A stretch of DNA of 63,789 nucleotides, filler included, from Platydemus manokwari (lineage: Eukaryota): the NCBI GenBank assembly GCA_037951405.1. It is 6 parts of 6 records of this genome, joined end to end, with 100 filler letters (N's around TTAATTAATTAA, not from the genome) between each part and the next. Parts side by side here need not be neighbours in the genome. Positions count along the whole stretch, not along the records: positions 18,789 to 31,827 come from JBBMOY011869165.1; 5 more parts are not named here. One strand, 5' to 3'. Below the pieces are notes generated by a model. The model was given only the letters and a program-made list of their open reading frames with translations, searched no databases and was not told the origin of the DNA. A program made the position numbers and the translations under genes. Shown here one piece after another: positions 21,793 through 31,827 of the stretch (within the stretch, counting starts at the first letter, position 1; every line of letters starts with the position of its first letter).

Positions 21793-22017
21793 ATGAAACT
21801 GAGGTAAAATTTATATATTGATTAAATATTTGATATAATTATTGAATGATATTGAAGATATCTATTTTTGATCTGCATTATTTTATTGGCTTTTAACATT
21901 GCCTTTGAGATGGTTTCGGGAACAACTGATTCTTCAGAAAATAGTAAGGATACAAAGAAACCTTTGAGAGAGTATCAGGGCAAAGATGGTAGAACCTATT
22001 ATGACACAGGACGCTAA
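21793..22017 (+). CDS. 56-aa secreted peptide precursor (exons 21793-21803 and 21858-22017): MKLRYLFLICIILLAFNIAFEMVSGTTDSSENSKDTKKPLREYQGKDGRTYYDTGR
   Basis: ATGAAACTGAG|gtaaaa...ttgaag|ATATCTA defines a 54-nt GT-AG intron that gives an exact 57-codon frame. The product has a basic n-region, a hydrophobic h-region and VSG as a likely signal-cleavage site, then KK, GK, GR and terminal GR-stop processing/amidation motifs. AATAAA lies at 22060-22065. Confidence 0.72.
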
Positions 22018-23099
22018 ACAGTGATAAATGAATGTTTATTCACATCTTGATTGGTGATTAATAAAATGATTTCAAAATAATTTTATCTCTTTTATACCAG
22101 TTCCAAATTATTTATTTTTAAATGGAAATCAATGCATTATAAATATGTTATTATTAATTTAATAATTATAAAATTCATTTGTAGTGTGTATCTATGTGCT
22201 TACATCATGTTGAGGGAGAGAATTTTAAATGATATACTTCAAATCTATCTATACTTCATCGATTTTACTGATTATTTGAGATTCCATAGTGCTATCGATA
22301 GATCGATTTTAAGGTTAATATCTTTCATTGCATGTTAAATATTAGTGTAAAAATATTAAATACATTATCATAATTATATTTCGATTACATAATAACTTTT
22401 CTAAAGCCATTTCGTTCAGTAGCAAATTATCGTTACTATTATGAATTATATAATTAATAATAATAATCATTATTGTTGAAGATTATTATTATTGAACCAT
22501 TTTTATAAATCTTTATTTATTATAATGCTTTTTTTAAAATTTGTTTTAATGTGTGTGTTTAATGATACGTCGGTGATAACATTTATTCAACGAATTCTCC
22601 AAATGGAAATTGAATCATAAACCGGATTATATGATTACATGATATAAGAAATCAAACAATGAAAGATTCTTCGTGCTTTATTTAAGAAACAATAAAAGAA
22701 AATTTCTAATAATTGTTTATCCTGTTATAAATACAAAATATCAAATTGATTTTTTAAACACATTTGGTTCACTCTAATTTCATTCGTCAAGTATCCAATT
22801 TTCATTTTCAATGTTTCGATAATATTTTTTTACTTTCTCGGATAAATAGAATTAAATCTAATGTTATTAAAATATATTTTCCTCGAGCGAAATAATTCAC
22901 AGTACCATTTCTCAGATTCTGTGCCATTTATCACATTCATATTTATCAACTGCGGAACATCCTTTATTTAGTTTTATTTTTCTTTCCTTAAGTAAATTTT
23001 TAATCGAATATCATGTTTAAACAGAAAACTGTATCATAACATGATTAGCATTGTTTGTTACCCTAATCTCATCTTTTGTAATAACTACAGTTAAACAAA

Positions 23100-23325
23100 T
23101 ATTTTGTCATTATATAGCTCAAATTCTAATGAATGAATGGCTCAATTTCTGGCTGACAGATTTTGCCAAGCACCAGATCCTAACTAAAGTGGAGCTTTTA
23201 ATATAAAACTTCAGAAGTCAACCAATAACTTCAGAATGAAATACGATATTCACGGATTTGATGTAAAATGGCGTTCTTGTTTATATGGACGATATTTTAG
23301 TGTATAGAATAACAGTAGATTAGAT
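23100..23325 (+). mobile_element. LTR-retrotransposon (Ty3/gypsy-like) reverse transcriptase relic
   Basis: Reads NGVLVYMDDILVY, with YMDD at 23282-23293. The surrounding frame is disrupted. Confidence 0.65.
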
Positions 23326-23339
23326 AAACTATCTGAATA

Positions 23340-23525
23340 GTGCATTTTTATTTCCCAGTTAAGCATTTTTCCAATTCATTAATACATTACTATCTTTGGA
23401 ATTCTAAAATGGCAAATCCTATAAAATTAAATATGTCAAACATTATACTTGATTTATTCATATGCACAGCTATTACATCTGCTGTAAATATCTTTGATAT
23501 AAAGTTATTTTCGATGTTATTATTT
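23340..23525 (-). mobile_element. Polinton/Maverick-type protein-primed DNA polymerase B fragment
   Basis: Minus strand reads KIFTADVIAVHMNKSSIMFDIFNFIGFAILEFQR. This resembles the AVHM.K..I.F.KP.Y.GF.ILE.SK segment that precedes motif C in Polinton pPolB. Confidence 0.6.
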
Positions 23526-28800: not shown

Positions 28801-29116
28801 TCCTTTGAAAATTTGAAATATTGATTCAGTAAATTCTACATTGATTTTCATGCATAGTAATTGCATTTTTATAGTTTTATTTTTATAGTATTTATATTTC
28901 TAATCGGCGAGCTTCTTCTTTTTTCACAAGCAAAAAACACGCTTCCCATTATATTTTGGATACCGCTTATAATAGGCAAAACACGGTAAGATGAGATATT
29001 TTTATTAGTTTTAATATTCTAAATGAATTTGAAAAATAAATTATTTGAGAAATCTGCTTGATAAATAATTTATATTTTACATAATTTCATATAAATCATA
29101 GTAAAGAGAAAACCTT

Positions 29117-29430
29117 TATAACATTATATTAATGAACTTTCATGCCAATTGTGATCCCAATTATAAAGGATTTTGCTTGAAAATATTGGCAAAGCATTTA
29201 TGAAATCAATCAATACACACAATTTTTTTACTTATGGAAAATCAGATAAAAGTTAAGCCCAAGTATTATAAGTTTGATAAATAGTTTGAATAATGTCGTT
29301 GAAAATAGTTCTGTGATCTTCAATTCTTTTCATACTATATGGATCTCTCATAAACTGTATTTATCAATTAATCTTACAATTGATTTCAATGAGTCTTGAT
29401 ATGAATGAATATTTTTACAAATAAAAATAC
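29117..29430. repeat. Inverted copy B of the peptide-gene upstream module
   Basis: The reverse complement aligns with 25612-25935. No peptide CDS follows it. Confidence 0.9.
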
Positions 29431-31047
29431 TATAAAAATATACTATTATATTTAAAATTATAATTTAAAATTATTATTAGTTAATTTGAAATTTCTTTTC
29501 AAAATTCACCGTTATAAATAAAATATATATTATCAAATCATCAAATAATAGTTGATGGCTAATATTATTATTGGTGTTATCTTTGATCTGAATATTTTTT
29601 AAAATATTTTATGAATTTCTTTCGTACGTGCTTTTGTAGAAAACGATTGGATGTAATATTCCAAGAAAAGTCAAGCCATTATTAAAGAGTAGAACACAAT
29701 CAGTAAAATTATATCTCAATCATTTTAATTCATATCGATCAGAGTGCTACTTTAACGATAGACTTTCAACTCGAGAATTTAAATATTGCATATTAATTTT
29801 GAATAACGTCTAAAAATTTATATTATATAAAAGTAGAATAAGCAAATTAATTAAAGCGTTATGTTTGTCAAATTGCACTGAAATAAAATCTAGAATTAGA
29901 TAAAAAACAGAAAACTAAAATTGATAAGGTAATTAAATAAAAATAAAACAATATATTTAAGAAGCAACTTGCACATATTGAATTCATGATCAGCACCTAT
30001 TAGTCACCATAATTAAAAATAAAAACAATAGATGTATAAACAAGTTATCGGTTACTGTGGCAAGTCTTGAAAATTAGTTTAAGTGGTTCTTTTGCAATCA
30101 AAAGTTGTTATGGCAGTTACAATTTACATCAACAGCCTCAAGATATCAGAAATAATAAATCTTTAAAGACCATGAATTGGAGATTTGACATTGCAAATTT
30201 ATTTTACTTTTTAATTTGATAATTTTATTGAAAGTTAAAAACAGAGAAAATGATAAAATTGATAATTAATAATTTATAAAAGGACAAGAATATATGAGCG
30301 GTTAGGATATTAGGAACATCATTCAAAAATAATTATCGATAAAGGTTTTGTTGATTTAAAGTCTATTATATTTATAATTTTAAATATTATAAATATCAAA
30401 GTTAAAATAAATTAATTTTATTAACCAAAATAAAATAAAAAGCAAATTATTATCTGTTATTTACTAAATATTGTAAAGCAAACATTATATTTAATAATTT
30501 TTTTAAAATCAAATGTAATTATTAAGTGAAAATCTTTTCAAAATCAAAATTAATATTAAAAAATAAATTTCAAAACATTAAAATCCAAATCATGAATTAT
30601 AATAAATAAATTATTTTTAATTATCAATTTTTTAAAATATTTTTACAATTCAATTTTAATATTAGATTTATTAGAAAATTATTTTAATCAAATATTGGTA
30701 TGATCTGTGTTAATTGAAAAAAATACAATATTAGATAAGACTAAATAAATGTTTAATGAAGAGTTCAAGACATTTTAAATAAAGAAGTTAGTTTAATTTC
30801 GAAAATTACCAATCGTTTATGAATGTTAAATAAGAATATTGAGTTGAAACGTTGGATTCGAATTTGTTTTAAAGCGTAACAGAATATATGATGACTTTGA
30901 AATTTATCTCACACAAGAACCAATGCACCCTTCATTGATATTGTTTTTATACAAAATTATAATTAGTAAACAATAATTTACACTTATTAATGGTTTCACT
31001 TATTATTTAAATAAGAAAAAACATCAAATGAAATTATTGAGATCATT

Positions 31048-31275
31048 TTATTTTGGTTTCGTACTACTTAAGCGACCATTATTTGGATTCGAACTGCTTA
31101 AGTGTCTACCCTTCGTATTGATGGAAGGTCTCAGAGTTTCTAGTCGACATACATTTTGTTCACCTTCATCATCATACCTGTTCGTCTCTGCTTCTTCGTT
31201 ACTGTTTTCTTCATCTCGTCGTGATACTTCATCTACACTTTGATATATCGCAAAAAATAATAAGCCAAATTTTAT
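31048..31275 (-). pseudogene. Paralogue of the 25204-25590 precursor with lost start codon: IKFGLLFFAIYQSVDEVSRRDEENSNEEAETNRYDDEGEQNVCRLETLRPSINTKGRHLSSSNPNNGRLSSTKPK*
   Basis: Collinear with the intact gene (RRDEENSNEEA vs RRDDENSNDEA; LRPSIN vs IRPSMN; SSSNPN; SSTKP vs SSMKP). The frame is open but begins ATA, with no upstream in-frame ATG before a TGA. The signal h-region is shortened and only about one repeat cassette is present. 5' and 3' flanks are also homologous. Confidence 0.85.
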
Positions 31276-31827
31276 TAATTGATTGCAGATGTAGTTTCAT
31301 TTTTAAGAATATTCATTCCATTTGGAACATATATGGTCATCAAGATGATTCGTTGAAATTCATTGTAAGATCAATTGATAAATGCGGCTTTTAAATGATC
31401 CATATAGTACAAAAAGAAATAAAAATATTAAAACTATTCTCAACATTATTATTCAAACCGTTTCGCAAACTTATAATATTAAAGAAAATAAAGAAAAAGA
31501 TAAAGATAATAAAGAAAAACAAATATTTAAATTGATTGATTTCATAAGTTCTTTACCAATAGTTTCAAGCAGGATCTTTTATAATTGCAATTATGATTGA
31601 CAGGAAAGTTCATTATTATAATGTTTTCTCTTTTATATGTTTGGTAATCAGTAGGCTAATAAAACATTATTGCTACGTGATACAATGTCAGATGTGGATA
31701 TTTTATTGGTTTATGAATATTTTTTTTTGTTTTCTTTATTTGATATACCTGGTTGAGTCAAAAGTTATTCATGTTTTTATGCAGGTATTTTATTAACACA
31801 AATTGTTATAACGCTGAACATATTATT

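Follow-up and report, generated by a model that had tools for sequence, protein, structure and literature searches.

Locally duplicated, lineage-specific genes for secreted peptides are common in invertebrate genomes, and small intronless orphan genes are routinely missed by annotation pipelines. Among the closest described systems are the multi-copy precursors of amidated neuropeptides and hormones (e.g., the RFamide-type precursors of cnidarians and bilaterians), which combine a signal peptide and an acidic spacer with tandem short units that each end in Gly and a basic residue, typically Lys-Arg between units, and which have no precursor fold. Apidaecin, an insect multipeptide antimicrobial precursor, displays tandem units whose number varies between paralogues, along with an anionic pro-piece and cationic products. 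The Hydra arminins and the aphid bacteriocyte peptides are products of small orphan genes, duplicated locally, in which a signal peptide is followed by an acidic and then a basic part. The SSSGP salivary genes of gall midges, in turn, are lineage-restricted genes for small secreted proteins whose copies, some direct and some inverted, cluster in a span of about 15 kb, and their hallmark is the far better conservation of the non-coding parts and the signal peptide than of the mature region (PMC2955719). Here, we describe a locus from Platydemus manokwari (assembly GCA_037951405.1) that shares features with each of these systems. It lies in a stretch of 63,789 nucleotides of joined parts (the window), and our analysis was limited to one of those parts, positions 18789-31827 of the window (JBBMOY011869165.1; hereafter, the piece), which is free of gaps (0 N), as an initial annotation of this DNA had stated. 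The central element of the locus is an intronless gene, termed gene A. We tentatively favor, at a likelihood that falls somewhat short of even, the reading that gene A is a multi-copy precursor of bioactive peptides and belongs to a young, lineage-restricted family for a small secreted propeptide, which is gaining and losing copies locally.

Gene A (25590..25204, minus strand) is an ATG-to-TAA open reading frame (ORF) of 128 codons plus the stop. Its first 20 residues (25531-25590, minus strand) constitute a canonical signal peptide: a Met-Lys n-region precedes a hydrophobic core of 14 residues, and Val-Glu-Ala lies just ahead of the cut. AlphaFold, given the single sequence, renders these residues as a confident helix (predicted local distance difference test, pLDDT, above 90). 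The signal peptide is followed by an acidic pro-region (residues 21-48; 25447-25530, minus strand; isoelectric point, pI, 4.8), which carries the sites RRR, KR and RNVR at residues 22-24, 36-37 and 44-47, the only di-/tribasic and RxxR sites in the protein; RNVR is directly followed by Gln. The remainder (residues 49-128) is a basic array (pI 12, charge +9) that is devoid of Cys, has no predicted fold (pLDDT about 40) and is dominated by a few residue types (S23, G12, N11 and P9 among 80 residues). At the DNA level it corresponds to a 30-nt tandem array (25226..25423, minus strand; 6.6 copies with 83% matches) that encodes units of the form F-S-S-S-(N/H)-P-N-(G/S/I)-G-R. The Gly-Arg in these units is strictly periodic, with Gly at residues 61, 71, ... 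121 (7 times, at 10-residue spacing) and a single Arg closing each unit (residues 62, 72, ... 122), and the codons of the pair differ only synonymously across all 7 units (gga/ggg and cga/cgg/cgc). The conserved part of the unit is the N-terminal F-S-S-S-x-P-N, and the residue that precedes the Gly is G, S or I. An AATAAA overlaps the stop codon, and a TATAAAT and a TCATTT initiator-like motif lie about 38 nt and 12 nt, respectively, before the ATG.

The length of the ORF is in itself weak evidence for a gene because the stop-free repeat keeps several frames open (the array is open in 4 of the 6). Signal-like starts were scored by a simple rule for the n-, h- and c-regions on ATG ORFs of at least 40 amino acids (aa), with 300 first-order Markov simulations as the null. 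Gene A is the sole ORF of this kind in the piece; 95% of the simulations yielded no ORF that passes the heuristic, the other 5% had at least one, and in 0 of the 300 did such an ORF reach 66 aa. The variation between the units points in the same direction: among the 6 full units, 8 sites vary, of which, in the frame of the gene, 5 do so synonymously and 3 non-synonymously (P=0.013 when the proportion of synonymous sites is taken into account), and the other five frames show no such bias (0-3 of 8 synonymous). Likewise, the GC content by codon position (0.41/0.54/0.26 for GC1/GC2/GC3, versus a background of 0.23) is elevated at the first two positions and close to background at the third, a pattern that also holds in the non-repeat part. 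We also considered the antisense strand, where an ORF of 142-162 codons spans the array, and rejected it because no ATG precedes the array in that ORF and synonymous bias is lacking. We conclude that gene A encodes, or encoded until very recently, a secreted, disordered protein, and the apparently intact precursor that the initial annotation had recognized here is more than a chance ORF.

Based on the above layout, we predict that the product of gene A would enter the secretory pathway and lose its 20-residue signal peptide, after which pro-protein convertases would cut at RRR, KR and RNVR and free the array from the acidic pro-piece. The Gln after RNVR would then be the N-terminus of the first, longer peptide of 13 residues, a residue from which an N-terminal pyro-Glu commonly arises. 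If the array were then cut after each Gly-Arg, the Arg trimmed off and the Gly used as amide donor, six octapeptides of the form F-S-S-S-(N/H)-P-N-(G/S/I)-amide would result in addition to this 13-residue peptide. Short amidated peptides are, on this reading, the probable products of gene A. It would share with the RFamide-type and other amidated precursors the signal peptide, the acidic spacer, the tandem short units that each end in Gly and a basic residue and the lack of a precursor fold; unlike these, it features a single Arg rather than Lys-Arg between the units and a variable residue before the Gly. It is not an RFamide itself because its Arg-Phe is followed by Ser, not Gly, and it has no sequence relationship to the known amidated precursors (see below). 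The resemblance to apidaecin lies in the tandem units, the different number of units in paralogues and the acidic pro-piece combined with a basic array. However, the gene A array has only one positive charge per ten residues, is not Pro/Arg-rich and has no dipeptidyl spacer repeats, and no sequence similarity is apparent from the features known for apidaecin. With the Hydra arminins and the aphid bacteriocyte peptides, again going by their known features, it shares the orphan status, the small size, the layout and the local duplication but no sequence similarity.

Through self-comparison and pairwise alignments within the piece, we found that gene A is part of a copied unit of 1.3-1.75 kb, which comprises a 5′ flank, the intronless coding sequence (CDS) and a 3′ flank and is present in three copies. 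Copy 1 (24245 to about 25990) is gene A with its flanks, namely, a 5′ flank or "upstream module" that is common to copies 2 and 3 (25591..25990, minus strand) and a 3′ flank that is common to copy 2 (24245..25203, minus strand). Copies 1 and 2 are direct and 5.7-6.2 kb apart, with the inverted fragment that makes up copy 3 between them. Copy 2 (30443 to about 31690, same orientation as gene A) retains an open frame of 82 codons (31296..31051, minus strand) that is homologous to residues ~5-75 of gene A and lacks an in-frame ATG. This copy has lost about 18 nt from the start and signal region as well as the KR and RNVR sites, and the two repeat units that are left are degenerate and without Phe. 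Its 5′ flank (31297..31690, minus strand) is 73-85% identical to that of gene A, and its 3′ flank (30443..30879, minus strand) is homologous to 24245-24496 and 25016-25056. Copy 3 (28991..29430, plus strand) consists of the 5′ flank only, with one segment (29117-29430) that is 86-91% identical to 25612-25935 and a collinear block at 28991-29066; its homology breaks off some 30 nt short of where the ATG would lie, and nothing that resembles a CDS was found beyond it. The decayed paralogue and the orphan copy of the upstream module that had been reported earlier from this region, therefore, both stand, as copies 2 and 3, respectively.

The identity between copies 1 and 2 amounts to 73-76% upstream, 77% in the signal region, 74% in the pro-region and 74% in the repeats, with the proximal 69 nt alone reaching 85%. 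Their coding parts differ with a dN/dS (ratio of non-synonymous to synonymous substitution rates) of 0.53 and with 13/12/23 differences at codon positions 1/2/3, which together point to coding constraint during part of their divergence. Judged by divergence, copy 2 is the older copy (about 25%) and copy 3 the younger (about 10%). Accommodating these observations, we propose that the unit was copied locally at least twice, with the gene A copy staying intact, the older copy 2 losing the start codon, most repeats and a portion of the signal region, and the younger, inverted copy 3 having taken the 5′ flank only. The three states of preservation (intact, degenerate and 5′ flank only) fit local gene birth and death. 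A simple tandem duplication of about 6 kb can be dismissed, as the sequences between and before the copies are not homologous. The clustering of direct and inverted copies within a few kb recalls the SSSGP genes, but the pattern of conserved non-coding and diversified coding sequence that typifies those genes is ruled out by the similar identity of flanks and CDS (73-77%) and by a dN/dS that does not exceed 1; unlike the SSSGP clusters, only the proximal 69 nt stand out in conservation, and gene A has no intron (PMC2955719).

The copies show several further peculiarities. The 3′ flank of gene A holds a tandem duplication with a period of 278 nt (24594-24766 and 24871-25044, 95% identical), which is single in copy 2 and, hence, arose after copies 1 and 2 split. 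About 380 nt upstream of gene A (26000-26366) are lacking from the otherwise collinear copy 3 (28991-29117); either copy 1 has acquired this stretch by insertion or copy 3 has lost it. Copy 2 also contains a short ATG ORF of 23 codons (31231..31300, minus strand), which starts from a new ATG at 31300 and is offset by one base from the 82-codon frame. The overlap of these two frames runs through a homopolymer-rich stretch, so that the break may be an assembly error as well as a real frameshift. Finally, every 30-nt unit of the array at 25226-25423 holds GTTCGAATCC, which is identical to the consensus of the tRNA T-arm/B-box, and a related TTCGAAT(T)CCA motif occurs in a conserved 3′-flank element of copies 1 and 2 (24738-24778, 25016-25056 and 30839-30879). 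Since ARAGORN and Rfam find nothing here, the match is probably a coincidence, the alternative being an origin of the repeat from a short interspersed nuclear element (SINE).

The exact gene A protein is absent from a collection of 15 billion proteins, a word search gave no match, and Pfam recognized nothing in it. HMMER searches against 1.84 billion representative proteins recovered 62 matches, none below 1e-30 and no self-hit among them; all of these are confined to the repeat region (residues ~55-125), such that the similarity is one of repeat periodicity. The 18 of the 62 that were inspected are all unrelated proteins with ten-residue repeats of their own. One match is a genuine neuropeptide precursor with about 20 F-Q-P-W-G-G-K-R units, with which gene A shares architecture, not ancestry. 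Scans of metagenome, prokaryotic-genome and viral contigs with back-translated gene A retrieved no relative, which is weak evidence of absence because eukaryotic DNA is scarce in these collections. For a 21-mer that is conserved in the upstream module, 4 matches turned up in metagenome and genome contigs; none of the matches extends past 21-26 nt, and these were set aside as chance. The predicted peptide strings were also sought in the literature, where nothing surfaced other than a match to a spider signal peptide: nine residues of the gene A signal region (SFLLLCVFA; 25531-25575, minus strand) are identical within the signal peptide of the defensin-like precursor Av-LCTX-An1a (PMC7287856). 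The mature parts of the two proteins are unrelated, and we reject kinship with the spider precursor in favor of a hydrophobic coincidence (PMC7287856). As far as the searched collections go, gene A appears to be an unannotated orphan, and the lack of detectable relatives fits a lineage-specific gene. It is possible, if rather doubtful, that it founds a previously undescribed F-S-S-S-(N/H)-P-N-x-amide family that is confined to one invertebrate lineage, has no entry in any public protein set and was therefore missed by annotation, and that the locus captures this family in the midst of copy gain and loss.

Several observations weigh against the reading of gene A as a precursor of amidated peptides. 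Cleavage in its array would depend on single Arg residues that lack a basic residue at the usual -4, -6 or -8 positions, and conservation within the unit is lowest at the would-be amidated residue (G, S or I). In known peptide families, it is usually the C-terminus that is conserved, and a conserved C-terminal motif is missing from the gene A units. The units are so alike that the conservation of Gly-Arg may in part be a mere outcome of recent unit duplication, and the test for synonymous bias draws on 8 variant sites only. Moreover, the CDS and flanks of copies 1 and 2 have diverged about equally (73-77% identity), which implies that the constraint on the protein was weak or that one copy has long been dead. 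Some of these points would be accommodated by a secreted protein that is not cut at all: a small, basic repeat protein, disordered and rich in Ser, Gly, Asn and Pro, may act in its intact form, for example, as a secreted effector or as a component of saliva, the venom gland, mucus, cuticle or matrix. The disorder and composition of the array, along with the lone Arg sites and the variable residue before the Gly, speak for such a role, and tandem and inverted clusters of small secreted-protein genes have a precedent in the salivary genes of gall midges (PMC2955719). Yet, an uncut protein leaves several features without a ready account: the strict Gly-Arg period, the canonical KR and RxxR sites that lie exactly at the border of the pro-region and the array with Gln right after RNVR, and the order of acidic pro-piece and basic array that is the usual layout of precursors. 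We hence regard the uncut protein as somewhat unlikely. The least likely reading of gene A, to which we give little credence, is that it is non-functional, i.e., a GC-richer 30-nt minisatellite with open frames and an accidental hydrophobic start or, at most, a proto-gene. Such an origin would be consistent with the four open frames of the array, the lack of relatives or an identical annotated protein and the equal divergence of CDS and flanks. On the other hand, it is opposed by the synonymous bias in the frame of the gene alone, a signal-like ORF beyond chance expectation, the periodicity of GC by codon position outside the repeats and the frame of copy 2, which has diverged by about 25% and is still open over 82 codons, with third positions overrepresented among the changes.

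A different alternative concerns the neighborhood. The initial annotation had posited a cluster of about 10 kb with two unrelated intact precursors, gene A and a second one that we term gene B, as a single co-regulated, lineage-specific effector locus. Gene B comprises a 53-codon open frame (21858..22017, plus strand) that ends in TAA, with an AATAAA at 22060-22065, 43 nt past the stop. To be a precursor, it requires a hypothetical exon 1 of 11 nt (ATG plus 8 nt; 21793..21803, plus strand), proposed by sequence inspection alone, and a hypothetical 54-nt GT..AG intron (21804..21857, plus strand), and there is an alternative good acceptor just before 21910. Genes A and B are indeed on opposite strands in convergent orientation, 3.2 kb apart, and the gene B model is the sole split-start signal-like model in the piece. 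Its frame past the hydrophobic part is also GC-richer (0.39/0.47/0.31 by codon position, with GC3 below GC1 and GC2) and has a purine-rich sense strand. Nonetheless, about 20% of 400 simulated 13-kb sequences of the same composition contain at least one model of this type. The "signal peptide" of gene B is a T-rich sequence at background GC that ends at the acceptor just before 21910 and may instead be a polypyrimidine tract that precedes the final exon of another, longer gene. A word search of proteins with exon 2 recovered no relatives, and the self-comparison of the piece revealed neither a paralogue of gene B nor a flank shared with gene A. The observation that both genes start with MKL and contain GR is correct as to the letters, but it carries no weight for gene B; in gene A, the Gly-Arg is strictly periodic. 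Gene B as a precursor is only possible, being indistinguishable from chance; it cannot be counted as a second intact precursor and is an unproven neighbor outside the gene A family. Because it is chance-like and has neither relatives nor a flank in common with gene A, a joint effector cluster is unsupported, and we deem it improbable. What survives of the proposed birth-and-death locus is the gene A family itself, with its three states of preservation and its apparent lineage specificity; the membership of gene B, the joint locus of about 10 kb and its setting among relics of transposable elements (TEs) and viruses do not.

This last point emerged from the general content of the piece, which is AT-rich, eukaryote-like DNA without CpG depletion (GC 23.4%; CpG observed/expected 1.04). 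Domain content was assessed at the protein level by comparing 35 open frames (25-144 codons) with Pfam, which gave sub-threshold noise only: no domains of TEs (transposase, reverse transcriptase or integrase), of viruses or capsids or of housekeeping proteins were detected. The reported density of TE and virus relics was, consequently, not recovered in these frames, and the reported absence of housekeeping genes among genes A and B was; indeed, neither Pfam nor the open frames disclosed any recognizable gene between the two. The Rfam and tRNA (ARAGORN) scans of the piece found no RNA gene or family, and the only long inverted repeats in its self-comparison are the copies of the gene A flank. 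Four islands (26964-27263, 23094-23258, 19539-19853 and 28899-28988) are GC-richer than the background (0.33-0.39 versus 0.23) and contain no notable ORF, Pfam match or RNA-family match. A 25-codon ATG ORF at 27253-27177 (minus strand) ends in an AG|GTAAAAT donor that resembles the proposed donor of gene B. The plus strand of 27289-27788 is strongly T-rich (AT skew -0.24); a stop-free frame of 130 codons in this region (27362-27751) was rejected as a gene, as its F/L/I/Y composition stems from the T-richness and it has no Pfam match.

Gene A, thus, represents an otherwise ordinary case of a familiar kind of gene family, with no sign of a new mechanism. If it is expressed and processed as predicted, it would add an unannotated, taxon-restricted family of signaling or defense peptides. 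The locus would also offer a compact example of gene turnover, in which 7.5 kb hold one copy that is intact, one that is dying and a fragment with the promoter only.

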